From assembly GCA_964234715.1 (NCBI GenBank), contig OZ174282.1: a stretch of DNA of 64,000 bases; one strand, given 5' to 3'. A model generated the notes under the pieces. It was not told the origin of the DNA and did no database searches. It saw nothing but the letters and a program-made list of their open reading frames with translations. The position numbers and the translations under genes were made by a program. This document shows, piece by piece, positions 6,101 to 50,950 of the stretch. This DNA comes from Podarcis melisellensis. Taxonomy: Eukaryota. Within the stretch, counting starts at the first letter, position 1; the number at the start of each line of letters is the position of its first letter.

Positions 6101-6964
6101 TCTTTCTCAAGGTCAAGCCAATGAGAAGGCCTCTGAGACTGATTTTAGAGCCATTGGATCATAGGAAGCTGCCTTATACTGAGCCGTATCACTGCCCCAT
6201 ACATCTCAGTGTTGTCTACACTGACTGGTCGCAGCTCTCCAGGGTTTCAAACAGGAAATTTTCTCAGCTCATGTGTGTATGTGCATCAAACAAAACCGAG
6301 ATATTGAATTCATATATGCAGAACATTTCAGCTTCTGCCTTCAGGAGGCTTGAAACATTTTGCTATATGAATTCAGTTTCTCTATTTTGTTAGCACAAAG
6401 AAGGATGAAACACTAGACTTGGAGGCTAAACTTCTCTGTATAAAGTTCCTTATGTGTGAAAAACACATTTTGTCACTATAGATGCAATCCCATGCATACT
6501 ACATGTTAATACATCCTATTAAACCTAATGGGAGCTACTTCCTATTAAACAAAACAAAACAGGCTTGTGCTGCCATTGTTATCCTTTGTATTCAGGAAGC
6601 TATAGTTTCTATGCCAGCTCCTTCCATTTTTCCATGGTGTAGAATCCTAAAAGGAAGTGAATTTCCCTCATTTTTATCCAAATGGAAAACATTTACAATT
6701 AAATTGAGCCCTTAAGTTTAATTGTAGGTTTTAGATCCCATGCGTAGAATAGCCCCTAAATGCAGGGAGTTTTCATACAATCTTGCCTCAAGGAGCATTT
6801 ATGTCCTACAAAAACATGCAGTTTCAGCTCACTGAATATCTAGCTAAGCAGTATTGAAATATTCTACATGGCTCCCTTAAGTGCAAAAACAGACTTACCG
6901 AGATGCTCCCATCTGGACAAAGGAGAAAGACAAGAAGAGCAGTGGTCACAACCTGGAGATGCAT
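125..6964 (-). CDS. Gene B (3' part outside the window): secreted Gly/Leu-rich protein with GGLLG microexons
   Basis: 6899-6964 MHLQVVTTALLVFLLCPDGSIS (signal peptide, ends TCG|GTAAGT); 5706-5717 APQL; 4039-4056 LGGLLG; 2995-3012 GAGSRR; 1598-1615 GGGLLG; 1074-1091 ALLVGN; 935-964 GLTDGLTGGT; 125-142 GGGLLG. All phase 0 with AG acceptors and GTRAGT donors. No stop exon found in the window. Confidence 0.8.
1822..2596 (-). mobile_element. Putative solo LTR inserted in a gene B intron
   Basis: About 775 bp absent from the paralogous repeat unit; starts TGTCG and ends ACAACA; minus-strand AATAAA near 1907-1912. No clean TSD seen. Confidence 0.45.
4652..4721 (+). mobile_element. CR1-type 3' end fragment
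   Basis: GGGTTGGACTCGATGGCCCTTGTGGTCTCTTCCAACTCTATGATTCTA, the typical CR1 tail. Confidence 0.65.
5108..5396 (-). mobile_element. Sauria SINE (internally deleted) with TSD
   Basis: (ACCTTT)n tail on the minus strand, conserved core, and 17-bp direct repeat CCCTCATCCTTACTGTA at 5091-5107 and 5397-5413. Confidence 0.85.
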
Positions 6965-17881: not shown

Positions 17882-20800
17882 CTGGAAAAACAAAATGCAG
17901 GCAACCATCTCAGACCAAGTGCAAAACAACAAGAACGTTGATGCGCTTGAACTCACGGGGAAAAAATCATCATGTAATTGCTAGAAGGAGTGGGTGAGGG
18001 TGCATCATTAAGTCACTATTTTAGAATGCACTTGAAAAGATTAAGTAATAGGCTACTGAGGACATCAAGTGGATCCTACAAATGATTGCATCATGAAAAG
18101 GTACATGAAATACTCAAGCTAGGCTTTTGAGGAGGAATGGATAGGGCAATAAGGGCATGGACATATAAGCATGTTGTAAAACAGGGAAAGTACACATTAT
18201 AATAAGAAACAACTAGATCTGAGGAGAATCTGCTGTTTCTTTTTTGAGTGGGTGTCAGGAATCTTTCAGCAGGTGCTTCAGTTTGAAGGGGAAGTTTGCT
18301 TTTAAAAAGTCAAAGTATTTGGGTAGATTACAAGATCATTTTGAAATATCCATCTATTTCAAGCTTTAATTCATGAAGATTTAAAGAGAGCTTGAAACAG
18401 ACGGGTCCTTCAAAACACAAAACCTTATTTTGTACTGCAAAACACTTCTTTTCCGTATCCACTGCAGATGTAATATTAATAACTTCCTGCCCCACAGCAG
18501 AGCGGGGGTGATTGTGTTCACAATTACAGCTGCTGTGAATGGCCATTTTGTTCATCAGGTTTTATACTGAATCATTGCAGACTGTTCTTTTTTGCATTTC
18601 ATTGTCATGTGGCTATATTTCCCATATCCCCTTCCCCTTATTGTCACATATGTAACTGCCAACTGAAGATAACAGAGGTGCCAGGTTGCTCCCAAGTTTT
18701 AGGGGGGTCTGGGGTGCATCACGTGTGTGACATCTGGAGGAGCTGAGCACTGAAGCTGCCACACACCCACACACGTGCTGGGCCCCCTCAAACAAATATC
18801 AAGGGGGCTGCATTTGCTAAAGTGGAGTGACTCTAACCAGTGTGCCACAATTAATCTCAATAAACTACTACTATCCCAAGTTGATGTTATTATGCTCATA
18901 TTCACAGGGCTACTTGAACCATGAGCATCCAGTCTTCCAGCTTATGCTGTTAATAGCTGCACCTGCCAGCTCACCTAAGGGGTAACTGAGCCACATCCAG
19001 ATCACTTGTATCTCTTTGTTGGCTGCACAGTCCTTGCAGTTGGAAAGGAAAGTTGCTCTCCCAGTAAAAAACTGAAATTGTACTTCTGAAATTTAACTTT
19101 GTGTTCTCCGGAAAGTTACAATGGCTGTTCGCTGAAAGCTATAAAAGTGCATTGAACTGAGCTTTCCCCTGTATTACTGTACTTCAACGCTACATAAGAG
19201 GGTGAAGGAAAAAAACCCCAAACAAGTGCGCTTTCGTTTCGGAAATGATGAATAATGAAAAGAATGCACTCCCGTTTATGTCTAACTTGTTTCTAAGTGA
19301 AAGTATTGAAAACACATTAATTAATGGTTGAAATTAATTAAAACGATTCTGCTTCATTTCTGCCATTGCTTATTCATAGGAGGCATTCTTAAAACTGACA
19401 AGAAGCATTGCATTGTATTACTAAGAATGTTCTGTGGGGGGAACAGAGACCCTGAAGAACTCTGAAAGAGGCAAGACATAACACAACCGTAAAGCTGGTA
19501 TACTTCTTTTCCTGAGTAAGAAGACCAAACTTAGAGGATATAATTCCTGACCAATCACTAAATGCAAAAAACCTGAACATGATATATTTCTTTCACCTAT
19601 ATATGCAGCAATTTAAAAATTAAATATATACGTGGTAGCCAATAAGAAGTATAAAAATGATTAAATGAACTTATGTACATTTTAGTACAGTGCCTAATAA
19701 CAGAAATTGTTCTGAGCTCTAGCTGTGCTGACTGGGGCAAGACTGGCAGGGCTCAGGATTTGCTGGTACTACCAGCACAGATTCCCCCTTCCTCATTGGA
19801 CTGCTCAACCAGGATGAAAAATACTGCTTCTAGGAAATTAATACTCACAGGTTCCTGACTTTCAAAAGGTGGTGGAGGAGGCTGAAAGAGAAAAGGAAGG
19901 AAATGGTTCTATTTCAATGCAATGCAAGAGATGTAGAATCCTGTTTGTAGGAAATTAATACTCACAGATGGACTTCCGCCAGGTGGTGGAGGAGGCTGAA
20001 AGGAAAAAAGAAAGAAATGTTTCTATTTCAAAGCAATGCAAGAGACACAAAAATCCTGTTTGTAGGAAATTGATACTCACAGGTTGACTTCCGCCAGGTG
20101 GTGGTGGAGGCTGAAAGGGAAAAGGAAGGAAATGCTTCTGTTTCAAAACACTGCAAAATATTTAGAATACTGTTTGTAAGAAATTGATACTCACAGGTTG
20201 ACTTCCACCAGGAGGTGGTGGAGGCTGAAAGAGAAAGGAAGGAAATGCTTTTATTTCAAAAACAAGTTGAATGATGTAAAATCCTGTTTCTAGGAAATTG
20301 ATACTCACAGGTGGTGCATTTATTCCAGGTGATACCGAAGTCTGAAATAAAGGAATGGAGGAAACTTTTGCGTTCCAAAACCATTTCATGCATTTCACTT
20401 TCCAAACCACAAAGAGTCAGGGTGTGTTCACATTAGCACCTTAAATCATTTCACAGCAATTTCCATCTAGCTGTTGACATGAGCATGGCTTAGTGTCATA
20501 GGAATGGCTTAATCTAATGATCCTGAAACTCGTTTGAGAAACATTGCATCAAACGGCAATATTTCACAACAAATTACAGGGTGCCCATGCATTTAATATA
20601 ATGTAATGTGAATACAGAATAAAAAAAACCAGCACTGGAAATGAAGTAAATGAATGATAAATGGAAGTGTGGACACAGCCTCAAATTCTTTTATAAAGTG
20701 GATTTGTTGTGCTATAGAAAAAGAGGCCTTTAATGTACTTTAATTACTCTGAGCTAAAATTCCACTACATGCCTGAATCCCTCCTGTAAAATACTGACAG

Positions 20801-23800
20801 TCCAGAGGAACCTTTCACAAGACGTGAAATAGAAGGGAATGGGAATGCTTGCAAATCTGATTTGTAGGAAGTTAAGGTTGCAGCCAGCCTTCTTATTTGG
20901 CATTCAACCTGAACCATTTGCAGAAAATTCATGGGGAGGTTGGAAAACAACATCAGTTGCTTATTGGGAAAAACATGTAGAATCCTGCTTGTAGGAAATT
21001 AATACTCACAGGTTGATCATTTCCACTGGGTGGAGGAGGAGGCTGGAAGAGAAAAGGAAGAAAATGCTTCCATTTCAAAAACAATGCAAATGATGCAGAA
21101 TCTTGTTTCTAGGAAATTGATACTCACAGGTGGTCCATATCCTCCATATGGCAAGAGAGGCTGAAAGAGGGGGGGAAAGGGAAATATTTGCTTTTCAAAA
21201 CAATACAAAAGCTGTAAATTCCTGTTTGTAGGGAAATTAATACTCACAGGTTGCTGATTTTCACCAGCTGGTGAAGGCTGAAAGATAAAGGGAAAGAAAT
21301 ATTTATAGGTCATTCATTCCGATTTGTTTTCGGATAGGTAATAAAACATTGGGTCAAGCAAGTGTCACCCCACACTTTTTCTGTTACTTTCCTTATTGCA
21401 AAAAGTCCAGTTTGCAGAGCAGTGGGGGAAAGATTCCTCTGCAAGGGCATCAAATCAATTTGTGCCACCTGAACTTGTCAGTATGTGAGTGAGCCCCATT
21501 TAGCATTGGTCTGGAAGTAGCCTAATACTTACAGGCTGTCCATATCCTTGATATGGCTGAGGATCCTGAAAGAGAAAGGGAAGGAAATTCTTGTACAGTG
21601 GTACCTCTGGTTACGAATGCTTCGGGTTACGAAGGCCGCTAACCCAGAAGTAGCTGCTCCTGGTTGTGAACTTTGCCCCAGGATGCAAACAGAAATCACG
21701 CGCCAGAGGCGCACACGCAGCGGGAGACCCCATTAGCAAAAGCGCGCCTCAGGATAAGAACGGTTTCAGCTTAAGAACGGACCTCCGGAACGAATTAAGT
21801 TCGTAACCAGAGTACCACATGCAAATGATACTATGATACTATAACCAGAGTACCACATGCAAATGATACTATGATACTATGATACAAATGATACTATGGC
21901 AGACCAACACGGCTACCTATCTGTACATGCAAATGATGTAGAATCACACTGGTAGGAAAATAATACTCACTTGTGGTCCATATATTCCTACTGATACGGA
22001 AGACTGAAACAAAGAAGGAAGAAAACATTTACATTCCAACACAAAACACAAATACAAAATATTTTTTGTCGGAAATCAAGTACTCCTCCAGATGACTTAT
22101 TTATTGAATGTTCATCCTGATTTGCTTCTTCAAAGCTTTTGCAAACTGTGTCTGGCCTTTATTGAGCATTTGTTCTGATTTGTCTGTAGGGCAATTAAAT
22201 GATAATGAGCATTTGTCCTGCATTCATCCCAATTTGCTTGCTCCCCCCACCTTCCCATTAATAATTTTTTCATTGCATTTCACTTTCCACACCACAAAGA
22301 GTCAGGGTGTGTTCACATTACCACCTGAAAGCATTTCACAGCACTTTCCATCTAGCTGATAACATGAGCATAGCTTAGTGTCATAGGAATGGCTTAATCA
22401 AATTGTCCTGAAACCAGTTTGAGAAACAATACATCAAATGGTAATACAGAGGAACCTCAGTTTTTAAGTGTCTCTGAAGCCAAATGTTTCAGTTTTCGAA
22501 CGCTGAAAACCTGGAAGTAATTGCTTCCATTATCGAATGGCTTCCGAGGTGCGTTTCTCAATTTTCTCCATTGAAACTGCAGACCGCCCATTGTGCCTCA
22601 GTTGTCGAATGTTTCGGAAGTCAAATGGTCTTCCAGAATGGATTACGTTCAACACCCAAGGTTCCACTATATTTCACATTTCAAATTACAGGGTGCCCAT
22701 GCATTTAATATAATGTCATGTGTATATGGAATAAAAAACCAGCACTGGAAATGAAGTGAACGTATGATAAACAAAAGCGTGGCCACAGCCTCAAATTCTT
22801 TTATAAAGTGGATTTGTTGTGCTGTAGCAACAGATGCCTTTAATCTACTTTAATTGCTCTAAACTAAAGTTCTGCTATGTGCCTGAATCCCTCCTGTAAA
22901 ATACTGACACTCCAGAGGCACCCTAATACAGAAGAGGAGAAAGAGAAGGGGATGGGAATGATTGCAAAACTGATTTGTAAGAAGTTAAGGTTGCAGCCAG
23001 CCTCCTTATTTAACATTCAACCTGAACCATTTGCAGAAAATTTGTGGGGGGGTTGGAAAACAACATCAGTTGTTTATTGGACAAAACATGTAGAATCCTG
23101 CTTGTAGGAAATTAATACTCACAGGTTGGTCATTTCCACTGGGTGGAGGAGGAGGCTGGAAGAGAAAAGGAAGAAAATGCTTCCATTTCAAAAACAATGC
23201 AAATGATGCAGAATCTTGTTTCTAGGAAATTGATACTCACAGGTGGTCCATATCCTCCATATTGTGGGGGAGGCTGAAAGAGAAGGAAGGAATATTTGCT
23301 AGGCATTCGTTGTGATTTGTTTGCTGGGAGGTTATAAAATTGCGTGTCAAGCTAGTGTCATCCCACACTTTTCTTGTTACTGTACTTTCCTTATTGCAAA
23401 CAGTCGAATTTGCAAAGGGGCGGAGGAAGGAACGTTGTGCAAGGGCATCAAATCAATTTAACTGTTCATCCTGAACTTGTCGGTATGTGACTGAACCCCA
23501 TTCAAAAATAGCATCAATTTGGAAGTGGCCTAATACTTACAGGCTGTCCATATGCTGGATATGGCTGAGGACCCTGAAAAAGAAAGGGAAGAAAATGCTT
23601 GCATTCCAATACAATTAAAAAAGACTTTAAATCTTTTTCTAAGAAACTAATATTCACAGGCTGCCCATTTCCCTGATTTGGTGGGGGAGGAGGCTAAAAG
23701 AGAAAGGGAAGGAAATGTTTCTATTTCAAAAACAATGCAAATGATGTAAAATCATGTTGGTAGGAAAATAATACGCACAGGTTGTCCATATATTCCAAAT

Positions 23801-26800
23801 GATACCGAAGACTGAAAGAAAGAAGGAAGAAAACATTTGCATTCTAAACCAATACACAAATATAAAATACTTTTTGTAGGAAATCAAGTGCTTCTCCAGA
23901 TTACTTGTTTACTGAGTGTTCATCCTGATTTGCTTCTTCAAAGCTTTTGCGAACGGTGCCTGGCCTTTATTGAGCATTTGTTCTGATTTGTCCGTAGGGC
24001 AGTTAAATGATAATGAGCATTCATCCTGCATTTATCCTGGTTTGCTCCCCCCTCCCTTCATCTTCCCATTAATCATTTCTTCCTTGCATTTCACTTTCCA
24101 AACCACAAAGGGTCAGGGTGTGTTCACATTAGTACCTTAAAGCATTTCACAGCACTTTCCATCTAGCTGTTGACATGAGCACAGCTTAGTGTCATATGAA
24201 TGGCTTAATCCAATCATCCTGAAACTCGTTTGAGAAACAATGCATCAAACGGTAATATTTCACAACAATTTACAGGGTGCCCATGCATTTAATATATTGT
24301 CATGTGAATATGGAATTAAAAAAAACAGTACTGGAAATGCAGTGAATGTATGATCAATGGAAGTGTGGACATAGCCTCAAATTCTTTTATAAAGTGGATT
24401 TGTTGTCCTATAGCAACAGAGGGCAAAATTTAAAGAATCCTGCTCGTAGGAAATGAATACTCACAGGTTGATCATTTCCACTGGGTGGAGGAGGCTGGAA
24501 GAGAAAAGGAAGAAAATGCTTCCATTTCAAAAAAAACAATGCAAATCATGCAGTATCTTGTTTCTAGGAAACTGATACTCACAGGTGGTCCATATGGTCC
24601 ATATGGTGGCGGAGGCTGAAAGAGAAGGAAGGAATGTATGTTGGGCATTCATTATGGTTTGTTTGCTGGGAGGTTATAAAATAGTGTGTCAAGCTAGTGT
24701 CATCCCACGCTTTTCCTGTTACTTTCCTTATTGCAAGCAGTCCAATTCGCAGAAGGGTGGAGGAAGGAATGTTGTACAAGGGCTTCAAATCAGCTTTAAC
24801 TGTGCAACCTGAATTTGCTAGTTTGTGGGTGAGCCCCTTCCAAAAATAGCATCAGCCTTGAAGTGGCCTTATACTCACAGGCGGTCCATATCCTGGATAT
24901 GGCCGAGAACCCTGAAAGAGAAAGGAAAGTAAATGCTTGCATATAAAATAAAAAGACTTAAAATCTTGCTCTAAGAAACTAATACTCACAGGCTGTCCAT
25001 TTCCTTGATTTGGTGGCGGAGGAGCGGGCTAAATGAGAAAGGGAAGGAAATGCTTACATTTCAAAAAACAACCCAAATGATGTGAAATCCTGTTGGTAGT
25101 AAATTAATACTCACAGCATATAAATATACGGCTGCTCCTGGATTCTGCTGAGGTTGTTGGGGAGGCTGAAGAAGAAAAGGAAGGAACTGTTTGCATCATT
25201 TTCATTTCTGAGAAACTGGTGTATAAATTAAGGGTGCAGCTAAACCTATGGATTTTACCTCCATTTGTCTGCCGTTTGTTACTTACATGATAGGCCAAAC
25301 ATGCGGAAGGCAAGTCCCAATGAAATACGGCTATACTTGGTGTTCATAACATTTGTTTTGTACTATTTCAGATTCACTGTGTAGTCTCTGTGAACCCTGT
25401 TTTTTATATTTTTTTCATTTTCCTTTATTTCATATTCCTTACTGGATTGTTATTTTAGCTTCATAATAAAGTCTTGGTTTAAAAAAAAGATGATGCAATA
25501 ACAGCTTTTTAATGATGAGTTCTGTGAAGAACACGGGTATCATGCAAGAGTTTGTAAGGTGATGGGTTGCCCGTGACATGTACCAGAAAGTAGGGGGCAT
25601 ACTTGCTTAATAGAGTCAATTGGAGCATGTTATTCCAAATAAATATTTTAGGCAAGCCCAGTCTAAATATAAGCACCCAGAGAAATTTGGATTCCCCCGC
25701 TTCAGGGCTGGATTCCTTTGCCATATAACACACTTTTTACTCCAAAAATGAAATATCCTGAGACATGAGGAAGTGATGGATTGCTGCCTAACAAGTCCAA
25801 AGGCCTCTTAGGCACATGGAAATAACTTTTCAACTCTTTGGATCATGTGCAGCTCTATGGCTCTATGACTTATATATATGGTAGCTCACTTAGCTACCAT
25901 AGGATATGAAACAAGGCGGCAAACCAAATTTGTCATACTCACCTGTTGTTGGTAAGAACCAGCGTTACTCTACAGAAACAGTAATTTTAAAAGTTTTGTT
26001 AGTTTTCTAATAAACGTTTGTTTGTTTTATTTTTTTTTAAAGGCATGGCAGAAGTCCAGGCTTATATAGGCATTAGGCGCGTGTGTCAACCACAAGATAT
26101 GCCTTGTATCTTTGGGAAGCAGCTTGATCTGTTTCAGCGTCTTTATAATTCAACTTGGGATCAGGACCAAATACAGTCTGTTAAAAGCAAGGCCCAACTT
26201 TTCCCCATTCACTATAAAGTGGGACCTCAGGTTAAGAACTTAATTCGTTCCAGAGCTCTGTACTTAACCTGAAACTGTTCTTAACCTGAAGCATCACTTT
26301 AGCTAATGGGGCCTCCTGCTGCTACTGCACCGCCAGAGCACGATTTTTGTTCTCATCCTGAAGCAAAGTTCTTAACCTGAAGCACTATTTCTGGGTTAGC
26401 GGAGTCTGTAACCTGAAGCATATGTAACCTGAAGCGTATGTCACCCGAGGTACCACTGTAATAGGTGCTATAATAGGTGCTATAATTCACTATAATAGGC
26501 ACTATAATAGGGGAATCTAAAAACAGCTATGTTTGTATTTTCACCCCTTTTCAAGGCAGCAGATAGAATTTGCTAGCATATTGTAGGTGCACATGATCTG
26601 ACTCCATATAAGGCAGTGGTGGCCTCTTGAATGATCTTCTCATGGATAGGATAATTTTTTTAAAAAAAAAGAACTCCAACATTTTGTCCCTAACAGTGTA
26701 CATATAGTACATGTGAATTGGTCATAAGAAAAGTAATAAACAAAGAAACCAGGAGTTGTTTGTTGTGCTTTATGCACAAATGTTTACTTTAATGCAATTA

Positions 26801-29800
26801 TTATTGGTATCTGAAGAAGTGTGCATGCACACGAAAGCTCATACCAAGAACTAACTTAGTTGGTCTTTAAGGTGCTACTGGAAGGAATTTTTTTTGTTTT
26901 GACTATGGCAGACCAACACGGCTACCTATCTGTAACTGCAATTATTATTATTAGTCAAATTTATATACCACCCTTCATCAAAAGATCTCAGGAAATCAGG
27001 AATGAAAATTGGCACTTCTTACCTGGAACGGCCATTGATAGCGGTTATTCTTGAAAGAAAAAGATAAGAAACAAATGAAGAGTTAATTACTTCAGTTCCT
27101 TAAGAGAGCTATTATGAAAAGATGGAGGTATTCTGTGTCCTGAGTTCTCAAATCCAGGAGGTGGAGAGATGGGCTGTTCTGAACAAGGTTGCACTCTCCT
27201 AGAAGCAGCAAGTCCATAGCTTGGAGGTTCTCCTGTATCCAACGCTCTCACCGGAGGCTCAGGTGGCCTCATTGGCTAGGATTGCCTTCTCCAGTTTCAG
27301 CTGGTTCCCCAGCTCTGGCCCCATTTTGCCCACTGTGCTATGTACTCTGTTAACTTCAAGCCTGGACTGTTGTGATGTGCTCTAGGTGGGGCTGCTTTTG
27401 AAGATGACTTCAATTGGTTCAAAATGAAGCCAAATTGCTGGCTGGGGTTTCATTGTACAACATTTGCATTGGCTGCCAGTTTGTTCCCAGCCCCAAATGA
27501 AGGTCTCACACTAGTGTTTAATGCTCAAAAGAACTTGGGCCCCAAATATCTGAAAGAACACCTTCTTCCTTACAGTCCCTCTCAAGTATTAAGTTCTGCA
27601 GAGAGAGACCTCTTGGTAGTTTCATCACCTTCAGAAGCTCAATGGTGGTGAGCGAGAAAAGGCATTCTCAGACCATGGCAGCCCCTAAGTTCTGAAATTC
27701 CCTCCCCACAGAGGTGCATCTGGTGCCTTCACTAAGCAGTTCTTGAAGAATCCTGGAGACACTTCATTCTACCCTTGTCTTGGACACTTGAGATCTATAT
27801 TTTTGGGACCCAGTCTATCATTATGATTGTAATATGTTTTAAATTGTTTTTAACATTTTTTTTCAATTGCTGGGACCTGCGGTAGGACCTTGGGTTGGAG
27901 GGCAGGTAATAAATAATTTAAATAATTTTCTTCATCGTTGCTTTCATTAAATGGGGTTATTTTACCCATTGTGCACTGGTAAACCTGAGTTCCTCACCAA
28001 CGCTTTTATAGCCATTTCCCCCCTGAATTGGTACCATTTGTTCTCTCAGATACTCTGCAAAATCCAAACAATACTGGTCGCAAACATTTTAACCGCATAT
28101 TGCCTTCCTATATTTTTTAAAATACTCATTGATTGTGATTTATTTGGGTTCAGACAGTATTGTTGCAGTACAATATTTGTATCACAGACTGGTATAGTAC
28201 CTTGCCTCGTCTTGCTATCATTTTGCCCAGTGCCTTTTTTTCAGGGGGTACTCAATGGTACCTCTTTTTGTTGTTGTTAAAAAGTGTGACACATACCGTA
28301 ACAACTTTGCGGTGAGTACCAGCACCTATTATTCTAGGGGGAAATGCGCCAATGTTGCCATATACAGTACCTTGTCAGCAATCACCAGTCTTTTATACAA
28401 AGATTGTACTGCAACATAAACACTATAACATCTAAACAAGTCTGGCAGCTTTTCCAGAGGATGGCTGGAAAAACTGTGTCTGCCCACTTGTTATGTGAGA
28501 TCCAATACCTTTTCTCAAAGAATTTGATTCGACAGCTGCATGTACATTTCCAATTACCGTGAACTAAAATCAAACAGATTTTTGATCCCCAGTGTGTTTG
28601 AATGTTTCAACTGCAGCATCTTTGGCAAACCGATTCCCTCTGTTGTTTTAGAAAGGCGCAAATGCCCAATTCCTTTGCCCGCAGCCAATTCATTGACCAT
28701 GCCCAGGAGTATCAAAGTCAACCTGACAAATCCAACATATCCGGTGACCGTGGCAGTATGTGACCTTTTCATTCTCTGGGACAAAAAGCTGTGGAATTGC
28801 TCTAGCTGCAAACTTAAGAAGAGAACTGGAAGGCTCTTCACATTCATGCCAAACCTTGCTTGCCTTTGGAATAGCAAAATTGCGAACATCCTCCCCCCCT
28901 GGCAGTACTTACATTTTGAGAATTCTTTCTAGAAAACGCTTCCTATAAAATAAAAAGGGGGGGGGCACAGTAGGAGTTACTTTAAGTAGCACTTCATTAA
29001 AATGATTCCTAAGGTAGCAGAAAGGTGCCCATTATTTCAGGGCCCACTGGGTTTTCTGTGGATTCTGTTTCTTCCGATTCAGCAGGAGGTTTCCCCAGGG
29101 AAAGCGGTGGAACAAAAACAACAAACAGCCACCTCTCAAATTTGTGACTTGAAATCACTTGAAATCATGGGACAAATGAAACTGTGGATGGGCCCTCAAT
29201 GACAAGAAATAGACCTGTCATATTTTCTGAGAACAAACAGCACCCATGGTTGAATAACTCTACCCAGGAATTTTGCTTAGGCAGGAAACATCTGTCTGGC
29301 TGTGTTGGAGACATGGGGTCTTGTGTGTTACCCCTTTCCCACTGTGGTAACATTAAGACCTGTTGAACTACAACTCCCATCAGCGTCAGCCAGCACAGCC
29401 ATATTTATGTATTGGAATGACTGGTTTAATTTCAGTAGGTTGCTAGAAATTCTTAACTTTTACAGATTTAGCTAAAAATTTTATACATGCAGACCTGAGA
29501 ATCAGTCTCATTGAACTCAGTGGATCTTAGCATTAATTTTAAGTTACAAAATGCATAAATAATTTGACGTATGTATGCTTGCATGATTTGTGTCTGCCAT
29601 TGTTAGTTTTTGTTGTGGTTTTTGATCAGCTGTGTTATAGGACAAATACAATGCCGAAAATAGGTTACCGGTATTTCTGAGTATTTTATCTTTGACCCAA
29701 AAGTTTACATGGGTATATACATGGCTAATCAGAGATTTAAATCAAGGTTTCACTACTCCAGTTCTGTCATTCTATATATCACACTGGCTCAAATCCAGTC

Positions 29801-29863: not shown

Positions 29864-32800
29864 GTTACTCAAACCCTTGGCTCAGGATGAGACACTGAAA
29901 TTATATGAATCTGTTAATATAGAAAGCATTTTCCATATACTGTACTTACTTTCACTCTTTCTACGAGCTCCATCTATAAGGAAAAAGGAATAAATTATTC
30001 AGAGTTTCTTAACTTTGTAAGTGCGAACAAGACATCCTTCTGGGTCTCTTGGTGGGTTTTGTTATCACTAAATATGGTTACCTTCTAGATAGAGGGTCTT
30101 TAGGGATTAGGGGTACTGTATTTCAGCCATCCTACTCCAACGTAGATAACATATCCCGGAAGGCAACACTGAGCAATTACTGAGGAATTCCATTATACAA
30201 TGGGACATTTCAGGATTTCACAGTGGTCTCCAAGTTTTTTAACATGTACAGTAGCTAAGCCCTACTTCTCAGAACAAATTCCTGGGTTTGGAATTACTTA
30301 ACTCTAAATCTGTGTCTTTTGCACCTAGTTCTATTTGGTGGGTCTTGGGATTCTAGCGGAAGCAAAGCCATGTCTGAGTTAGAGGAGGATTCAGATGTAA
30401 TCTCCTCCACCCACCACTTGTAGCCTGAAGTGGGACAGCCCTATTTGATTCCACCGAATGTATAAACTGCCCCAGGGCCGGCGGTGGGAAGAGAGATAAG
30501 GGGTGGTTTGTGACATGATCATATGAGAGCGCTGGAGGTGAAATAGTTAAAGAAGTTACCCAATCAGAACCGGGGGGGGGGCATGTGGAGTCAGAGGAAC
30601 TATAAAACCAGCTCTGGGAGGGGCGAAAGGGGAGTTTGTTGGGAATTGGGTGGTTGGTTGGAGTGGGAGCGAATTGGGATAGAGCCTGTGGGTAAGTTGA
30701 GTTAGTGTAGCGAAATAGGCTGAGTCAGGAACAGTTAGGAGCTAGGAAGACAAGTAAATATCTGAGAGGTGGTTAAGTGAGTGAGAGCAGGTAACGGAAG
30801 TTATAGGTCTGGATAGGCACCCTATGATTGTAATTGACTGATACCATTTATGAAACCACACACTTGTTAAACTGCAATAAATAAACAGAAGTTTATGTTC
30901 CAATTTAACCCTGACTGGACTCAGTATTGTACCAGGTAGGGCCTGGGTGGTGGCAGTGAGAAATAAAGTGGTGGCACAGGGATCAATAGACGGTGAAACG
31001 TCCAGGGACCCTGTGTGATCGCCACATGGTTTATATCCACTTATATTACATTTTTATCTCACTTTTCTTCAATGAAGAAGGTTCATTGCATCAGCCCTCT
31101 AAGGTAGACCAGGCTAAGAGAGAAGTCATATAGGGAGTACTGTGGCTCAGATTTGGATCCCGGTCATCTCACCAGGTCTTGACATGATGCCTGGTATACC
31201 AGACTTTAAATATATACAGTATATATATCTTAGCCCAGTAGCTGTCTTTACAACTTTTCATTCCGCTTAACACGTCTCAGTATTGGGCACTAAGATTATA
31301 TGAAACAACCAGAGAAGAAAATCCTTTCCATTTACTTACCGGCATCTCGAATAATCTTTTCATCTGGAGGGGAAAGAATGTAGGTTATTCAAAGAGGAGA
31401 GCTTCCAGACATGGGGTTAAGATGGTAAACTCACATCCAGAACCAAAAATGCAGCATGGGGACCTGCCCCACCCACCTACTCTGTGTTCTACAGCCAGGC
31501 CATTCATAACTTTAGGCAAAGTGAGGTAGCCACTTCAGACGTCAGGTCTTGGGTGTCACGAAAAGGTAGAAATTGTTGGTAGAGGAGGGAGAGACACACA
31601 CCTGGTGCTCTGCCTCAGCCAGGAAAATGTCTATAGCAAGCCCTGCCTAAGGCCCTGATCCAGCAGCTCGTACAGCAAGGGCTGCAATGCATATCTGCAA
31701 GCCAGGTGGGATCTTCAACAATATGAGAAAGGAGAACCTCAGTTTAGCCTCTCTATCTCCAAAGCTGCCAGTTGGCTCTAAGGATAAATATATCAAGGAA
31801 GCTACATGTGTGGAATCAGCCGTGTATGTTGTGCACAGTACCCATTCCCACGTAAGTATTGCATGCTTCCACACACTGAGCTATCAAGGTGCCCCTCCTA
31901 GGACATCCCTGGAGGAAGGCAGCGGTCAGTTCCCCCATTTACAATTTCAGCAGAAGCGTGTTGGGGGTCAGGGAGACCCCATGTCTGTCTCGAAAACTCT
32001 CCCCAAGCAGCCCTGCAAGAATAACGATGAGCTTTATTTAAACTGTGGCAATCGTGAAAACAAATAGCACCATGACCCACCAGAGAAGGAAGTAACAACT
32101 CCTGCTTTGTACATGTTAGCGACTTAAAATGCAACAAGGTTATTCTCACCAACCCACTGCAACAAGGTTATTCTCACCAACCCACTGTGTTTCAAGTCAC
32201 ATTAGCACGTTGCTGTACATGCTAAAGAGGAGGCCGGGATGTCTTCACCCAATGCACATTCTTTGTTTGGCATCCCTGCTGCTTTAAGCCCACTACCTCA
32301 CTCCTATTCACGAAGCTGTCACCTGTGCATTCACAACAGCTGCCCCAAAATCTAAACAGCCCAGCTTAGGTGCAAAAGGCATGTGGCTGCCATTTTCAAA
32401 TCGGATAGAAGCTGATTTGAGAGGAGGTGCGTCAAATGGCAATATATCTCAAAGAAGCTACAGGACAGATAGGGGGATGTGGCTAATGTCAAAAACCAGC
32501 AGCGGGGGTACAATCAAGCCAGAGTAAATGGCAATGTGTACACAGCCCAGGTTTCTCTCTTATGGCTTTTTAAATGGGAATTTGTCACACATCATTGTGT
32601 CTTAAGGTATAGGTGCGTATTCTGTGCCTGTCTCATCTGCCAACAGACCACTAGCCTAGAAAATTTTCTTCTGGGACGCTCCGAAGGTAAAATTCTACAC
32701 CCAATGTCTTTTTGGACTAAGCTACATTGAACTCAGTGGGGCTTACTTTATTTATCTATTTATTGCATATGCATCCTGAGAGGGAATACGTAGGATTCCA

Positions 32801-35800: not shown

Positions 35801-38800
35801 AAATAGTTCACAAACCGGAACAGTCACTTCCAGGTTTGCGATGTTTGGGAGCCAAAATATTTGGGAACTAAATTGTTTGACTTCCAAGGCACGACTGTAT
35901 TTATTTCTAAGTGCATGTCGTTGGTGCCTGGTTCTGTTTGGTGGCTCCTGCGATTCTAGTAAAAACAAAGTAGATCCCAACAGCCAAAACCAGGCTTCCT
36001 CAACCTCAGCCCTCCATATGTTTTTGGCCTACAACTCCCATGATCCTTAGCTAGCAGGACCAGTGGTCAGAGATGATGGGAATTGTAGTCTCAAAACATC
36101 CGGAGGGACGAGTTTGAGGAAGCCTGGCCTAAAGTCTGCCAATTCCCAAGTTAGAGGATCATTCCAATTTAACTCTCTGTTTCTCAAAGAATCTTGCCTA
36201 ATTCATTTATGATACTGATTTTATATTACAGCTTGTGGCATGATGAACAACATCCTAATTGAAGAGCAAAGAACATAGTTTTCCTCTCTCTTTACCTTCA
36301 ACCAACCAAGGAGAAAAAAATATCCCAGTCTGATTTGGTCCAGGAATGTCCTATTCCAAAGCCAAATGGGGACAAAGCTTTCCTTTTAATGTTCACATAT
36401 GTTAAGATTAATCATGCATACCTTCGTCTCGGCCTTTGACCCTTGAGATGTATGCTTTCAGGACTAATTCTATAATGTAGCTTAATTGCTTTTAAGTTAT
36501 GAATTTTAAATTCGGGGACTGGCTGGTGATGGGTGGCAATACATTTAGTAACGTTCATCACAATCATCTAACCAGAACAGCTTACATGTGACATGTTTTG
36601 CAGTTTCTTCCTTCAAGTTGTGACATGCTAGTAATTTGGCCCAATACTCAACTTCACCTTTCCAGTCAGCTAACCCGTTTCAATATTAGATATCGAGGTG
36701 ATAGGAAACACCCAGAGAAAAAAGACCCTTCTGTATACTTACTGGTGTAAAATCTTGCAACTAGAAGGGGGGGGAGAAAACATAGATTATTCAAAAAGGC
36801 TTTTTGTGTGTGTTTCCGTAAACCGCTTCACAATTTATTTGTAACAGTAAGTGGCATATAGATGGGAAATGCCTCACACAACCATGCATTTTGGAACCTC
36901 TATGGCAACTTCTTCCAAGGAAAAGGGGGATTCTCATCTATTTGCTGCCTTCACTTTTTCCTTGCAACTCCCCCACCCCTGCCTTTCTAACTTTGGGGTT
37001 TCATATATCCTGAACCATTTGGGCAGGAAAGCACCCACACCACACCCTAGGAGCCAACTCCTACAGGCTGTGGGGCTTTGTTCCCCACCATAAAATATTT
37101 GAAGGGGCCTACAAAGTTGATGGGCACTCCCATTCAAATGATTTGTGTGCACTGCATCATGTGATTATGTGGGGCGGGGCTTACCTGGCCCCCCACAATA
37201 TTTTATTCAAGTTGGCGCCCCTGCCTCCCCATCCTGTCTTCATCTGTGCAGCTTTCCCACTTTGTATTCAATAGAAGAAGAAGAGGAGGAGGAGTTTGGA
37301 TTTGATATCCCACTTTATCACTACCCACTTTATCACTAACATTCTCCTTTCCCTTCCTCCTCAACAACAAACACTCTGTGAGGTGAGTGGGGCTGAGAGA
37401 TGTCAAAGAAGTGTGACTAGCCCAAGGTCACCCAGCAGCTGCGTGTGGAGGAGCGGAGACACGAACCCGGTTCACCAGATTACGAGTCTACCACTCTTAA
37501 CCACTATACCACACAATAGCCAGGGCCAGCCCTACCATTGGGCAAAGAGGGGAAGTCTTATAGGACGGGTGGACCACTTAATCATCAAAGCAGTTAAGGC
37601 AAGTTAAATCCATCAGAAGTCATAGCTAAGTCCCATGGAAATCAGTTTAGATCTTAAGAGATAGGAAGCTCACATTTTGCTTTTTTTTTACAAGGGGAGC
37701 TCTTCATGCAGCATTGTACCTTTTATTTCTTGTGATGCATTGTGTCCACTACTTCTCATTATGTATGTGCACTCTGGGTCTTTCTTGCCTGTCCCTATCA
37801 CATCTCTTCCCCTCTACAGACCACTAGCCTTTACGTTTTTCTCTTGAGGTTTTCCATTGATGCTCTGAGGGTGAAATTCTATAGCTGTCCCATTGAACAC
37901 CGTACATTTAAAGCACATGTTCCCCACTAAAGAGTCCAGGGAACAAAACTTTACTCCGCACATAGCTACAATTCCCAGGATTCTTTGACAGGGAAAGATG
38001 TGGTTTGAACGTGCTTTAAATATATGTTGTGTACGCAGCCTTTTGTCTGTGTAGGCACCCATGCATAGGATTGTGCAGCAATTCATATACTGTATTAAGG
38101 ATGCAATCCTATAGATGCTTACCTGGGAATAAGCCCTGCTGAACACAGTAGGACTTAATTCCAAGGAGATATGCATAGGATAGCATTGTTAGAGCATGGT
38201 TCTAAGCACACATGGTTCTAAGCCTTTGGAGCAGCATCGGACTCAAGGGAACTAGGATCTCAGTGGCATTTTGACACAGAAATCACAGCCTCAGGAAAAC
38301 AAAAGTTATTTTACCCATCCTTGGTTTCTGTTTGACGAACTCTACAAAAAATAAAAATAAAAATATTATTTGATCTGGTTTGTGTCCACATGGGAAAAGA
38401 AACTGCATAGGTACACAGACCCTTAAGCACACATTTATTTTCTTGTAATCAAATGGACTTATTACTTCCAATTAAACCTGTTTAGGTCGCAGAGCTGAGA
38501 CAGAGTTCCTTCGGCGGGGGGGGGGGGGGTATCATGAGATTTATTTATTTTTTTGAGATTTATCATTTCCCCCTTGAAAAAGAAGCCCACTTTGTAAATT
38601 TATCTCCCTACTCTATATCAAGTTGGCATCTTCACACAGTTTAGTAGCAGCCTGCACTTCTAAGGAAGGCTACATGTAGTCAGTTCAAGCCAAAAGTCCT
38701 ATCCCATTATGCTTCATTTAAATGTTTAGCCCTTATTAGCCCGATGTAATCTTTATACATTTCAACATGTTTATATGCGCACTTCCCCCTCCAAAAATTA

Positions 38801-48159: not shown

Positions 48160-50950
48160 TTTTCAGTGGTGGCTCCCTGTCTCAGAATGCCCTCCCTGTT
48201 CAAATATTATTCAAAAAATTTTTTTGCATAAACGTGCATCCTCAACATTACAAAATTAAGGCTGCATAAACGTACATCCCCAACACCACTCAAGAACTCT
48301 GGAAACTGTAATTTACCCTCCACAGAGCTACAATTCCCAGAACCCAGAACATACTTCAATTCCCAAGATTTGGGGGTTGTGTGAGCTTTAAATTTGCTTT
48401 ATATGCATGGTGTATAAGCAATCTAAGAGAACAGAATGAAGACAGAGACCACCTCAGACCTTGCTCCAGCTGCACCCTCTAATAAACACCCTCCCCTGAA
48501 TAAGGTACTACCAATTTATATATTGAGCTATGTAGCTTAATACCCCATAGCACAGTCACAATAACCCGAAGAAAACTTTCTCATACTTACTGGAGGAGGA
48601 GGCTGAGGCTGAGGTGGGGGAGGTACATTTGGGCCCGAATAAGTAACCTGTAAAAGATCAAGAGAGAAAGGTGGTTCAGTCCTTTTTGTTGCCCATCTCA
48701 CATCCTCACAACAAAACCCAAAATCAGTGTGGGTAAGCTTGCTGCTGAGATTTGCAGGAAATTCCATCCCTATCTATAGCCCTTGGCTGCCTCCACGTGG
48801 AAATTTATTTGCACATAAACTGATCGTTCCAGGAAAAGCCCTTTCCAGGAGGAAAATAAAAGCTTAGGCAGGTCCAGTGCTTTTGATAGGATCCTGTAAG
48901 CTGATAATCCCTGCCTGGGGTGTGAAGAGGTGGAATGCCTTCTTTTAAAATCAAAATATAAAATGAATTTTATTTTTCATGAAAACCCACAAGCGGGGCA
49001 TGAGTGCAACACTTCCAGCCCACTCTTCTCCCCAGCATGAGGATGCTTCACTCTGTGCATAGCTGAAGCATGGAATTTGCTAGCACAGAATGTAGTGCTG
49101 GTTAGAAGCTTGGATGGCTTTAAAAGGGGAGTTAGACAAATTCGTGGAGGGCCAAGGCTTCTGTGACTACTAGCCACAAGGGCTGTGTACTGCCTTCAGT
49201 TGTTGGGCATCACAAGTATGGAGAGTTGCTGTTGTACTCAATGCGCTGCTTTGGAGCTTCTCAAAGACATCTGATCTGCCACTGTGAGAACAGGATGCTG
49301 GAGTAGATGGGTCTTTGGCTGATCAAGTAAGACCCTGGAAGAAGATGGCTAATTCTAGCCCAGAACAGGACTGGTCCTGTTAAACAAGTGAGGGTGTTTT
49401 GTCGCAGATCCTACTCGCGTAGCATCCTTTTTGAGAGAAAGCATAACAAAAGCAGATGGACAAAATGTGTCGTACTTACGGAGGCACCAAAACCAGGATT
49501 CCACTGTGATAACAAAACAATTGAAACGATGCTGTTAGTTTCCATGAATTTAATTTGAAATAGACTCTGGGACATAAGCCATTCTTTGCAAGCAGGATTC
49601 ACAGTACGATCCTATTCATTCCTATTTGGAGTCAAAAGTAACTTCCATTGAGTTCAATGGGACTTACGCCCTGGTAAGTGCACATAGGAGTTCTGCCTTA
49701 GTTACTCTCTTATATCCGAGTACGAAAAGGTTTGTTGTGTTCGCTGGAAGCACTGTATGTGGACTCAAGCCCTGTCCGCAATCGGGAGACATTAACAAAC
49801 GGGAAAACAAGGTTTTAACCCAAAGCTCCCCACTTCTATCTGAAGAAGTGTGCATGCACACGAAAGCTCATACCAAGAACTAACTTAGTTGGTCTTTAAG
49901 GTGCTATTGGAAGGATTTTTTTTTTGTTTTGACTATGGCAGACCAACACGGCTACCTATCTGTAACTCCCCACTTCAGACAGTCACCTTCCATGTTGCAA
50001 GGAGTGGGGACGAAATTCAGCTCAGTTGTATTTAAAAGCAAACCATCCTAATCTGCCCTTTCCAAAACAATGCGCAAACTGAAATGCAGTCACCATTCCA
50101 AATTACCAGCCAGGGAATGTGTACAAACATGCATGCACAATACCAGGGTAAAGTGTGAGCATTAGTGAAAATAGCATACAGAATGTATTACATTAAGGTG
50201 TACTGCCTTGCAGAAATGTGTCTATTAGGGGAAATTGCATGCAAACATGTAAAATCTAGGAGGAATTCGTAACGAAATGCTGATGAATTTTCAGAATTAC
50301 ATCTTTCTTTAATGCAATCTACTTGGAGAACTGAGCTAAAGAGAAATGAGAAACTGGGATAAGCCAACTAACACAGCAATTGCGGGGGGGGGTGTGTGTG
50401 CAGAGTTAGCACACTGGCCCCCACTGCTTCTTCTTACAAGCAAAATGCCCTCTCAAAACTCTCTGGTTTTTATAAACAGTGCCTTGACTTCCATCACTGA
50501 AGGAAGGCACAGGTATCTACTAATTATTTTGGCAAACTGTTTGTTCGCTATGTATTTGGACACTTCTTAAGCTACCATAACTAAATCTTGCATGATGGTT
50601 CCTGAGATCAAGGAGCAGGTTTTCATCTATGTTTGCACCAGATGACATTTTGAATCAAGAGGGCAAACTGAACCTTTAAAAACTGTCCTGATTTTAACCA
50701 CTAGTTTCATTTTTTTATTTTTTTATAATTCCCGAGCAATGCTGGATAAAGGGCTTCTGGTCAATAAATAACATGACACTTTTGATTCACATTGGTTTAG
50801 GTCCCCCACTCCACCTCCCCCCACTAGCATCCAATTAAAAGCTGATGCTGCATTTCTCCTAGAAGTCCGTTTCCATCTCACCTGTGCATCCGTTTCTCTT
50901 GCACAAAGTGCAGAGATTAAAAGAACGGCGGCTACAACCGGGAGCTTCAT
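17873..50950 (-). CDS. Gene A: secreted Pro/Gln/Gly/Tyr-rich protein encoded by 42 coding exons, mostly phase-0 microexons (~468 aa if all are included)
   Basis: Exons read manually; each internal exon has a pyrimidine tract+AG, a GT donor and a length divisible by 3. In transcript order: 50882-50950 MKLPVVAAVLLISALCARETDAQ; 49480-49503 WNPGFGAS; 48591-48647 VTYSGPNVPPPPQPQPPPP; 47959-47982 GPYDGQNS; 47369-47416 and 45359-45406 AYLGVQAQPWQPQPPP; 44523-44555 QVGLYVGSPGP; 43182-43262 QGSGYSGSPGARPYPPPPPPQNGYPGS; 42465-42494 DDGGQSVDAW; 42132-42158 WEELINSVE; 40940-40963 NEFGGRRQ; 40440-40469 SSSKQSSPGL; 39322-39354 LAGIFGGSRKQ; 38315-38341 SSSNRNQGW; 36743-36760 LQDFTP; 33263-33283 TDDSPNW; 31340-31363 MKRLFEMP; 29950-29973 MELVERVK; 28913-28942 EAFSRKNSQN; 27023-27049 NNRYQWPFQ; 25943-25969 SNAGSYQQQ; 20 Pro-rich exons between 25165 and 19849; 17841-17881 AP-stop. 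No in-frame stop occurs before the last coding exon. Confidence 0.85.
19849..25165 (-). CDS. Gene A Pro-rich microexon array (20 exons, 30-51 nt)
   Basis: 25115-25165 PPQQPQQNPGAAVYLYA; 24990-25028 PAPPPPNQGNGQP; 24879-24911 GSRPYPGYGPP; 24583-24615 PPPPYGPYGPP; 24465-24494 PPPPSGNDQP; 23779-23811 SSVSFGIYGQP; 23658-23693 PPPPPNQGNGQP; 23541-23573 GPQPYPAYGQP; 23241-23273 PPPQYGGYGPP; 23123-23155 PPPPPSGNDQP; 21971-22003 SSVSVGIYGPQ; 21533-21565 DPQPYQGYGQP; 21248-21277 PSPAGENQQP; 21128-21160 PLLPYGGYGPP; 21010-21042 PPPPPSGNDQP; 20309-20341 TSVSPGINAPP; 20195-20224 and 20081-20110 PPPPPGGSQP; 19966-19995 PPPPPGGSPS; 19849-19881 PPPPPFESQEP. Donors are mostly GTGAGTAT/GTAAGTAT; acceptors TTTCAG/TTCCAG/TTTTAG-like. 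Confidence 0.87.
21596..21818. mobile_element. Tc1/mariner-pogo-type MITE
   Basis: TA-CAGTGGTACCTCTGGTTACGAA ... TTCGTAACCAGAGTACCAC inverted termini; right end damaged. Confidence 0.75.
22447..22670. mobile_element. Tc1/mariner-pogo-type MITE (diverged)
   Basis: TACAGAGGAACCTC...AAGGTTCCACTATA; absent from the paralogous intron copies at ~20560 and ~24255. Confidence 0.65.
26217..26458. mobile_element. Tc1/mariner-pogo-type MITE (same family as 33793 and 41413)
   Basis: Internal TAACCTGAAGC repeats; ends GAGGTACCACTG-TA. Confidence 0.75.
26808..26936 (+). mobile_element. Penelope-like retroelement terminal fragment
   Basis: CTGAAGAAGTGTGCATGCACACGAAAGCTCATACC...CAACACGGCTACC; a near-identical copy lies at 49838-49966. 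Family call from memory. Confidence 0.55.
27240..27920 (+). mobile_element. Degraded L2 LINE 3' region
   Basis: Frameshifted homology to the reverse complement of 62100-62700; ends in AATAAATAA. Confidence 0.6.
29815..29861. repeat. (CA)n microsatellite
   Basis: Direct observation. Confidence 0.95.
30509..31026 (+). mobile_element. Solo LTR in a gene A intron
   Basis: TGTG...CACA termini, 5-bp TSD TGGTT (30504-30508 and 31027-31031), internal CCAAT, TATAAAA (30601) and AATAAA (~30876). Confidence 0.8.
32812..33140 (+). mobile_element. Sauria SINE (5' truncated)
   Basis: Core CTCCTGCCAACCTAGCAGTTCGAAAGCA...GTAGATAAATAGGTAC and TTTACCT tail. Confidence 0.85.
33793..34034. mobile_element. Tc1/mariner-pogo-type MITE
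   Basis: TA-flanked; CAGTGATACCTCAGGTTA...TAACCCGAGGTACCAGTG. Confidence 0.8.
34162..34413. mobile_element. Tc1/mariner-pogo-type MITE
   Basis: TA TSD; TIRs CAGTGGTGCCTCGCAAGACGAA / TTCGTCTTGCGAGGTACCACTG. Confidence 0.85.
35352..35610. mobile_element. Tc1/mariner-type MITE
   Basis: TA TSD; TIRs CCGTATTTTTTGCTCTATAAGAC / GTCTTATAGAGCAAAAAATATGG. Confidence 0.8.
35671..35897. mobile_element. Tc1/mariner-pogo-type MITE
   Basis: TA-CAGCCGTACCTTG...CAAGGCACGACTG-TA; a related copy lies at ~53874-54101. Confidence 0.75.
37275..37513 (-). mobile_element. tRNA-derived MIR/CORE-like squamate SINE
   Basis: Close paralogue at 42768-43012; tRNA-like head (GTGGTTAAGAG...GGTTC) and (TTC)n tail on the minus strand. 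Confidence 0.7.
38996..39128 (+). mobile_element. tRNA-derived SINE with CR1-like tail
   Basis: A box TAGCTGAGCTGGTTAGAGC, B box GTTTGATCCC, then CTTCCAGCTCTACAATTCTATGATTCTA. Confidence 0.65.
41248..41820 (+). mobile_element. RTE-clade LINE 3' fragment interrupted by a MITE (41413-41649)
   Basis: Degenerate RTE C-terminal coding sequence (WETLACERSSWR..., then a Cys/His motif ending RIGLHSHLRTH), (GAA)n/(GGA)n tail; nested TA-flanked CAGTGGTACCTC...GAGGTACCACTG element. Confidence 0.7.
42768..43012 (-). mobile_element. tRNA-derived MIR/CORE-like squamate SINE
   Basis: Paralogue of 37275-37513. Confidence 0.7.
44981..45028. repeat. (TTA)n microsatellite at an L2-like tail
   Basis: Direct observation; the adjacent 45030-45165 resembles the reverse complement of 15530-15675. 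Confidence 0.85.
45343..47690. repeat. Direct duplication (~45343-45690 and ~47353-47690) carrying gene A exons 5 and 6
   Basis: Highly similar sequence at ~2010-bp offset; the two exons differ by one synonymous base (CTT/CTC). Confidence 0.9.
48080..48157. repeat. (GA)n microsatellite
   Basis: Direct observation. Confidence 0.95.
49838..49966 (+). mobile_element. Penelope-like retroelement terminal fragment
   Basis: Near-identical to 26808-26936. Confidence 0.55.
50882..50950 (-). CDS. Gene A exon 1: signal peptide MKLPVVAAVLLISALCARETDAQ
   Basis: Basic N-terminus, hydrophobic core and small-residue cleavage region; AAAATG start context; ends CAG|GTGAGA (phase 0). Confidence 0.88.

Follow-up and report, generated by a model that had tools for sequence, protein, structure and literature searches.

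Is a tandem array of roughly 115-bp units in a lizard genome, resembling a minisatellite, non-coding DNA, or does it encode a protein repeat exon by exon? This question is raised by a stretch of 64,000 nucleotides of contig OZ174282.1 from Podarcis melisellensis (assembly GCA_964234715.1), hereafter the window, whose minus strand carries such an array at 19849-25165. An initial annotation, made from the letters of the DNA, had described a unit composed of a short exon and a homologous mini-intron, arranged in a cassette repeated about three times, and had proposed a two-level amplification under selection, a coding use and a likeness in composition to the salivary proline-rich proteins of mammals. 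We report here that the array is spliced and expressed in a closely related species. In our view, it very probably encodes, one repeat per exon, the C-terminal domain of the product of a minus-strand gene that is expressed and is predicted to start with a signal-peptide exon near 50.9 kb.

Splicing and expression of a twenty-exon array

The exons were mapped on the minus strand by a pattern scan followed by inspection by eye, in a window that contains no run of N. Twenty exons of 30-51 nt, each encoding a proline-rich repeat of about 10 residues, could be delimited directly (Table 1; units are designated by block, A to D, and number). Their lengths, 30, 33, 36, 39 or 51 nt (36, 39 and 51 nt once each), are all multiples of 3, and the 20 phase-0 exons add up to 672 nt, i.e. 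224 residues. The proline frame (frame 0) is the sole open one, without any stop across the 224 codons, versus 2 stops in frame 1 and 5 in frame 2. A proline codon stands last in 18 of the 20 exons and first in 16. The GT..AG dinucleotides are kept at all 20 units on the minus strand, with a weakened donor in B1 (GTGCGT) and both a weakened acceptor (TTTTAG) and a weakened donor (GTGAAT) in B2. Frame and splice sites are thus maintained in every copy, as had been stated initially, apart from this weakening in B1 and B2. The plus-strand reading was rejected: splice sites that could be used are lacking there, and the joints described below in RNA end in CT..AC, that is, GT..AG on the minus strand.

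In the repeated unit itself (minus strand, 19813-25165), a short exon is flanked by an acceptor rich in pyrimidines (consensus ...CATTTCCTTCCTTTTCTCTTTCAG) and by a donor (GTGAGTATTAATTTCCTAC...). At 19813-20312, Tandem Repeats Finder detects a period of 114 bp in 4.4 copies with 83% matches, and the intron motifs of the donor side and of the acceptor side occur 16 and 10 times, respectively, all on the minus strand and only at 19830-25117, 0 being expected in shuffled sequences. Twelve of the 19 array introns measure 78-88 nt; those between units 3 and 4 measure 255-267 nt, the spacers from unit 5 to the next unit 1 653, 1119 and 668 nt, and the C1>C3 intron 405 nt. The exon and mini-intron unit of the initial annotation is therefore confirmed by the twenty mapped exons, the 114-bp period and the motif counts, and the lengths of 84, 85, 84 and 84 nt that it gave for the introns in 19882-20308 are exact.

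Within 24879-25028, 21128-21277 and 20195-20341 (minus strand), several mini-introns of 78, 84 and 87 nt are stop-free in frame; as their length is a multiple of 3, their retention would leave the frame open. Stop-free read-through open reading frames (ORFs) of 82 and 98 residues are observed. An intron length that is a multiple of 3 is found in 10 of the 19 introns, which is not significant.

Expression was analyzed in an RNA-like run (label 'RNA?') of another closely related species, named X16, in the form of assembled contigs, with depth given in 181-nt bins. Four joints fall at predicted exon borders, namely 20224>20309 (84 nt skipped), 23273>23541 (267 nt), 24494>24583 (88 nt) and 25028>25115 (86 nt), and all four read CT..AC on the plus strand, hence GT..AG on the minus strand. 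Fifteen of the 20 array exons are supported by RNA, while depth is 0-27 over the long spacers. Loose contig ends also enter the next predicted exon: those at 20195 and 20309 continue into the following proline exon, that at 21010 into a D1-type exon and that at 23241 into a type-5 exon. The loose end at 25168 reads the exon 25943-25969 plus the last 6 bases of the exon 27023-27049, and thereby ties the array to an upstream part of the gene. Such a pattern of depth and joints cannot come from a genomic library. Altogether, the RNA depth on exons and the joints at predicted borders indicate that the array is coding and expressed and is not a spliced-out minisatellite. This evidence for expression and splicing is what is new here; it establishes the coding use that had been proposed and disposes of the idea, raised together with it, that the region could be wholly spliced out.

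Table 1. Exons, spacers and inserts of the array and of the gene upstream of it, in transcript order; depths are those of the RNA-like run X16 (181-nt bins) unless DNA is indicated
Feature	Position	Strand	Description	RNA in X16
Signal-peptide exon (predicted)	50882..50950	-	MKLPVVAAVLLISALCARETDAQ; donor GTGAGA; phase 0; prediction only
Pro-rich exons (predicted)	48591-48647, 47959-47982, 47369-47416, 45359-45406, 44523-44555, 43182-43262	-	phase-0 scan
Non-Pro exons (predicted)	42132-42158, 39322-39354, 36743-36760, 31340-31363, 29950-29973, 28913-28942	-	phase-0 scan; down towards the array
Upstream exon	27023..27049	-	27 nt, NNRYQWPFQ	last 6 bases in loose end
Upstream exon	25943..25969	-	27 nt, SNAGSYQQQ	joined to exon P (loose end 25168)
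Exon P	25115..25165	-	51 nt, PPQQPQQNPGAAVYLYA; lead-in of the array; donor flank matches unit motif	bin 3702; joint 25028>25115
Exon A2	24990..25028	-	39 nt, PAPPPPNQGNGQP	joint 25028>25115, depth 6328
Exon A3	24879..24911	-	33 nt, GSRPYPGYGPP	bin 3047, common to A2
Exon A4	24583..24615	-	33 nt, PPPPYGPYGPP	bin 1229; joint 24494>24583
Exon A5	24465..24494	-	30 nt, PPPPSGNDQP; 3-nt in-frame deletion relative to B5/C5	bin 1063; joint 24494>24583
Spacer intron A5>B1	23814..24464	-	653 nt to B1 border; homologous to the other 2 spacers (self-BLAST 88-92%)	20-27
Exon B1	23779..23811	-	33 nt, SSVSFGIYGQP; weak donor GTGCGT; sequence reading	intron level
Exon B2	23658..23693	-	36 nt, PPPPPNQGNGQP; acceptor TTTTAG, weak donor GTGAAT; sequence reading	bin 0
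Exon B3	23541..23573	-	33 nt, GPQPYPAYGQP	bin 763; joint 23273>23541, depth 4314
Exon B4	23241..23273	-	33 nt, PPPQYGGYGPP	bin 2558; joint 23273>23541
Exon B5	23123..23155	-	33 nt, PPPPPSGNDQP	bin 1180; loose end at 23241 enters type-5 exon
Spacer intron B5>C1	22004..23122	-	1119 nt; repeat insert at ~22440-22680 with DNA depth peak
Exon C1	21971..22003	-	33 nt, SSVSVGIYGPQ	none
SINE-type insert in C1>C3 mini-intron	21594..21925	-	38-bp tandem duplication 21804-21880; DNA depth 265,000-480,000
Exon C3	21533..21565	-	33 nt, DPQPYQGYGQP	bin 6
Exon C3b	21248..21277	-	30 nt, PSPAGENQQP; extra unit, cassette C only	~1
Exon C4	21128..21160	-	33 nt, PLLPYGGYGPP	bin 323; joint 21160>24465, depth 1770
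Exon C5	21010..21042	-	33 nt, PPPPPSGNDQP	bin 6836; loose end at 21010 enters D1-type exon
Spacer intron C5>D1	20342..21009	-	668 nt; 92% identity to 24085-24422	6-19
Exon D1	20309..20341	-	33 nt, TSVSPGINAPP	bin 2492, common to D2; joint 20224>20309
Tandem run D2-D5	19849..20224	-	introns 84, 85, 84 nt	2500-5500; loose ends 20195, 20309
Exon D2	20195-20224	-	30 nt, PPPPPGGSQP	bin 2492, common to D1
Exon D3	20081-20110	-	30 nt, PPPPPGGSQP	bin 3646
Exon D4	19966-19995	-	30 nt, PPPPPGGSPS	bin 5558, common to D5
Exon D5	19849-19881	-	33 nt, PPPPPFESQEP	bin 5558, common to D4

Amplification of units and cassettes

The homology of units and cassettes can be read directly from their alignment. When the 20 units were aligned, with 45 nt of intron kept on either side of each exon, they clustered by type and not by neighbourhood: A2 and B2 share 81% identity, A3 and B3 80%, A4 and B4 88%, A5, B5 and C5 88-97%, and B1 and C1 85%. 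Identity between different types is 45-77%, with most pairs below 70%. Five types form a cassette that is present about three times. After it come four units repeated locally in tandem (D2-D5), which are 73-87% identical to one another and have the type-5 units as nearest relatives (up to 80%). By self-BLAST, the cassette copies are 86-92% identical and share three spacers (25116-24434 with 23780-23092, 86%; 23282-22669 with 21169-20559, 90%; 24257-23735 with 22446-21927, 88%; 24422-24085 with 20726-20389, 92%). The cassette with shared spacers reported in the initial annotation is therefore found where it had been placed, with two corrections: in cassette C unit 2 is absent, so that C1 directly precedes C3 across one mini-intron, and an extra unit, C3b, is present. 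The two levels of amplification also stand, since units group by type across cassettes and D2-D5 form a tandem group of their own.

In the simplest scenario, a single ancestral unit, an exon with its mini-intron of about 115 bp in all, could have diversified into five types; the five-unit cassette would then have been copied about three times together with its spacers, and a type-5-like unit would later have undergone local amplification, four times over. These events were likely driven by misaligned recombination or by replication slippage at the homologous mini-introns and spacers. Either process would account for both the loss of unit 2 and the gain of C3b in cassette C, irregularities such as misaligned recombination between homologous mini-introns would be expected to leave. 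The cassette copies differ by 8-14%, as compared with about 2-4% between the species examined over the array; the amplification thus predates this species group.

Three sets of DNA contigs were compared, one from a second individual labelled as the same species (X4) and one from each of two sister species (X5 and X6). Over the array their depth is about 10-30 (X4, X5) and 45-130 (X6), which is the base depth of the runs, and it peaks only over transposon inserts. An X5 contig of 556 nt covers 19800-20314, i.e. the entire D run, with an unchanged number of units, and in all three sets contigs of 609-737 nt extend over B4 to B1 (23209 to 23822-23950). Base-level depth and spanning contigs thus show the array to be single-copy DNA and exclude both an assembly artefact and a dispersed repeat. 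No copy-number polymorphism, which the initial annotation had thought probable, was seen in these contigs, collinear wherever they span units, although short-read contigs cannot resolve the cassette level. The apparent 'joints' in DNA have just 20-26 letters on one side, and those listed carry foreign letters between the two sides, as is typical of repeat edges.

Two further observations concern the same region. Two transposon inserts of the short interspersed element (SINE) type, with very high DNA depth, lie in array introns (21594-21925, in a mini-intron of the 85-nt type, and ~22440-22680), and a related element is present at 26250-26450; loose ends of DNA contigs are numerous at 21593/21594 and 21925, the edges of the former insert. 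At 23209-23822 and 24577-25197 the X4 contigs differ by about 2% from the reference, mostly in the same way as X5 and X6 (e.g. 23246, 23301, 23343, 24737-24969). It is then the reference haplotype that deviates, which suggests deep haplotype diversity or else introgression at this locus.

The host gene, its product and its surroundings

Upstream of the array, a minus-strand scan for phase-0 exons yielded a chain of predicted exons that would begin with a signal-peptide exon (Table 1); the RNA check covers the two exons nearest to the array, 27023-27049 and 25943-25969. The predicted N-terminal proline-rich part contains a 340-bp duplication (45343-45682 and 47353-47686, 93.5% identity), each copy with a predicted 48-nt exon AYLGVQAQPWQPQPPP (45359-45406 and 47369-47416), so that exon duplication is not limited to the C-terminal array. 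The 224 array residues comprise 41% Pro, 16% Gly, 11% Gln, 8% Ser, 7% Tyr and 4.5% Asn, a single Arg (0.4%) and no Lys, Cys, Trp, Met or His. The product would be a secreted, uncharged and disordered Pro/Gly/Tyr/Gln protein, whose length would count more than its exact sequence, for instance a coating, matrix or binding protein.

Several points weigh against this picture of an expressed C-terminal domain. The link of 25 kb between the signal exon and the array rests on predicted exons only, and a scan for the 3' end below 19849 gave several candidates, none of which could be singled out. The RNA comes from another species and from assembled contigs, so that it does not prove isoforms, strand or ends in this genome, and RNA support is absent in X16 for B1, B2, C1, C3 and C3b, whose bins have a depth of 0-1 (B2, C1, C3b), 6 (C3) and 21 (B1), the latter two being intron level. 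Two of these five, B1 and B2, are those whose splice signals are weakened. Moreover, exons of same-type units are 86.6% identical, hardly more than their 42-nt intron flanks (84.0% and 83.1%), and the codon differences between them, 37 non-synonymous and 10 synonymous, are near the neutral expectation. Exon conservation thus provides no evidence that the exact residue sequence is important.

What is conserved is of another kind. The six exon length differences between same-type pairs, which represent about 3 independent events, are all of 3 nt, and across unit types exon lengths differ solely by multiples of 3, while indels of 1, 2, 3, 4 and 5 nt occur in the intron flanks; between genomes, none of the 12 listed indels is exonic. 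The best-conserved columns over all 20 units are the last 20 intron nucleotides plus GTGAGTAT. Among the 40 best-supported substitutions listed between genomes, 3 lie in exons, 2 of them non-synonymous (20329, Pro/Ala; 23246, Pro/Ser), and as exons make up 12% of the stretch this is no clear deficit. Because every exon is symmetric and proline stands at exon ends, the gain, loss or skipping of a unit never breaks the frame, which means that selection acts on frame, splice signals and composition and not on residue identity. In other words, what is selected is a spliced, in-frame, proline-rich spacer. The initial claim of selection consequently holds for frame and splice signals and not for exon bodies, which diverge like the intron flanks and accumulate mostly replacement changes; of the two signs of decay it had named, intron-like divergence of the exons is found and frameshifting indels are not.

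The surroundings provide one marker of synteny in the window. A plus-strand ORF at 59422-60306 has relatives in alligator and a frog that are named 'uncharacterized protein C8orf90 homolog'; searches for its identity in the Protein Data Bank, ESM Atlas and Pfam gave no match. This gene lies 8.5 kb upstream of the micro-exon gene, head-to-head with it, in a GC-rich stretch (56% GC at 58-60 kb). Its human counterpart maps to 8:142.6 Mb, at 8q24.3 (PMC11395840). On the other side, a neighbouring Gly/Leu-rich micro-exon gene has its signal exon at 6899-6964 on the minus strand (MHLQVVTTALLVFLLCPDGSIS, donor GTAAGT), and 8 of the first 16 residues are common to this exon and to that at 50882-50950. 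The mini-intron motifs of the array were not found in the Gly/Leu-rich gene. These shared signal residues are compatible, as weak evidence, with the two genes being old paralogues. Between genes lies debris of mobile elements, with a reverse-transcriptase fragment at 62663-63436 on the minus strand (Pfam RVT_1, E 1e-29). A 108-residue ORF at 52557-52883 (minus strand) gave no Pfam match; we take it to be transposon-derived, part of the same kind of debris.

The locus shows clearly how, in a vertebrate, a protein repeat can be assembled exon by exon while near-minimal introns are copied along. It could be used to study the amplification of exon-plus-intron units, the way in which the vertebrate spliceosome recognizes 30-nt exons spaced by 85-nt introns, and how a coding array is kept by selection on frame and splice signals alone while its residues drift. 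As its 224 residues include a single Arg and not one Lys, the array product would be missed by tryptic proteomics, and an abundant secreted lizard protein may thus have escaped notice. Automatic gene models of related species may already include this gene.

Alternative readings and known systems

The alternative that survives best is a generator of diversity of the type of the schistosome micro-exon genes (MEGs), in which combinatorial skipping of micro-exons would yield a set of secreted isoforms, differing in length and sequence, under diversifying selection. Symmetric micro-exons and a signal peptide are indeed the architecture of such genes (PMC4350168), five exons are without RNA, and non-synonymous changes prevail among the codon differences. 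Abundant joints in X16 also link exons that are not neighbours, 23572>21009 (type-5 to B3), 21160>24465 (type-5 to C4) and 23155>24465 (type-5 to type-5), at a depth of 1675-4314, similar to that of the canonical joints. These joints fit the skipping of B1 and B2 and of C1, C3 and C3b; they would be explained equally well if cassettes were composed differently in the other species, or if diverged letters had failed to align, the joints being marked 'between: not known'. The type-5 exons, moreover, are almost identical, which makes the placement of the joints ambiguous. The excess of replacement changes, for its part, is also what neutral drift would give. We thus consider a dedicated generator of diversity rather unlikely.

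A parallel could also be drawn with the mammalian salivary proline-rich proteins, of which the lizard protein would be a functional analogue, an oral-gland protein binding dietary tannins or coating surfaces. In favor of this, Pro, Gly and Gln add up to 67% of the residues, in short repeats rich in proline; a signal peptide is also predicted, and expression is very high in one library. In addition, both systems would share secretion and a number of tandem repeats evolving by unequal recombination. However, the PRB repeats are of 20-21 residues, contain Lys and Arg and lie inside one large exon (PMC3235478), whereas those of the lizard have 10-13 residues and each its own exon. The array is also uncharged rather than basic, and rich in Tyr. 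The likeness claimed by the initial annotation is hence limited to the share of Pro, Gly and Gln, since charge, Tyr content and gene structure all differ, and a salivary function of this kind seems improbable. In the literature on the femoral-gland proteome, the term 'proline-rich' was not found, and nothing relevant was found on micro-exon or tandem-exon proline-rich genes of reptiles. The proline-rich peptides among the ovo-defensins of lacertids were rejected as relatives, for these have an eight-cysteine motif (PMC12278569) and the array has no Cys.

Membership of the SCPP (secretory calcium-binding phosphoprotein) family, as a P/Q-rich gene like those of enamel, casein and saliva, was the first candidate. 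In its favor, all introns are in phase 0 (array exons and predicted upstream exons all have lengths divisible by 3 and an open frame 0), the predicted signal peptide stands on its own 5' exon, the product would be disordered and Pro/Gln-rich, and growth by exon duplication is common to both. The SCPP genes, however, occupy two clusters in human, both on chromosome 4 (PMC10888740). SPARCL1 and the enamel genes are the markers of that location. This candidate was dropped once the neighbour was found to be the C8orf90 homologue, although the location is judged from that single neighbour. Furthermore, the exon after the signal exon (VTYSGPNVPPPPQPQPPPP) has no clear Ser-x-Glu, isolated SVE and SQE motifs being seen further on, and acidic or phosphorylatable blocks are absent from the array gene. 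Altogether, this makes an SCPP origin very improbable.

Finally, a non-coding minisatellite or a decayed array of pseudo-exons removed from the transcript deserves next to no credit: exon bodies do diverge like introns, two units have weak donors and five are without RNA, but 15 exons lie in bins with an RNA depth of about 320-6800, four joints fall at predicted borders, and neither a stop nor a frameshift occurs across 224 codons.

We therefore return to the array as the expressed C-terminal domain of a lizard gene. A short repeat per symmetric exon is also found in the arrays of titin PEVK and of collagen type, where blocks of exon plus intron have been amplified to higher-order repeats, as here. 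Titin, which is intracellular, and collagen, which is triple-helical, are encoded by ancient and conserved genes with longer introns, whereas the lizard array has near-minimal introns and encodes a low-complexity protein that is predicted to be secreted.

In architecture, the gene comes closest to the schistosome MEGs, which combine a signal peptide with very small symmetric exons, and whose secreted products vary by exon skipping (PMC4350168, PMC10526429). Like them, the lizard gene has very small symmetric exons, a predicted signal peptide and thus a putatively secreted product, and an organization in which skipping is safe for the frame. The introns of MEGs are nevertheless long, reaching 5 kb, and MEGs are reported from platyhelminths only (PMC4350168), whereas the lizard array belongs to a vertebrate, has 12 of its 19 introns in the range of 78-88 nt, and is made of homologous exons in tandem that code for a proline-rich repeat. 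The two share no sequence relation, and the likeness would be at most convergent. On this basis, an attractive hypothesis, possible if still some way from probable, would be that we are dealing with a vertebrate counterpart of these genes: lineage-restricted, very highly expressed and secreted, with cassettes gained, lost and alternatively skipped so as to vary the length and the sequence of the product. Together with its Gly/Leu-rich sister gene 9 kb away, it could then belong to a small, as yet undescribed squamate family of secreted micro-exon proteins.

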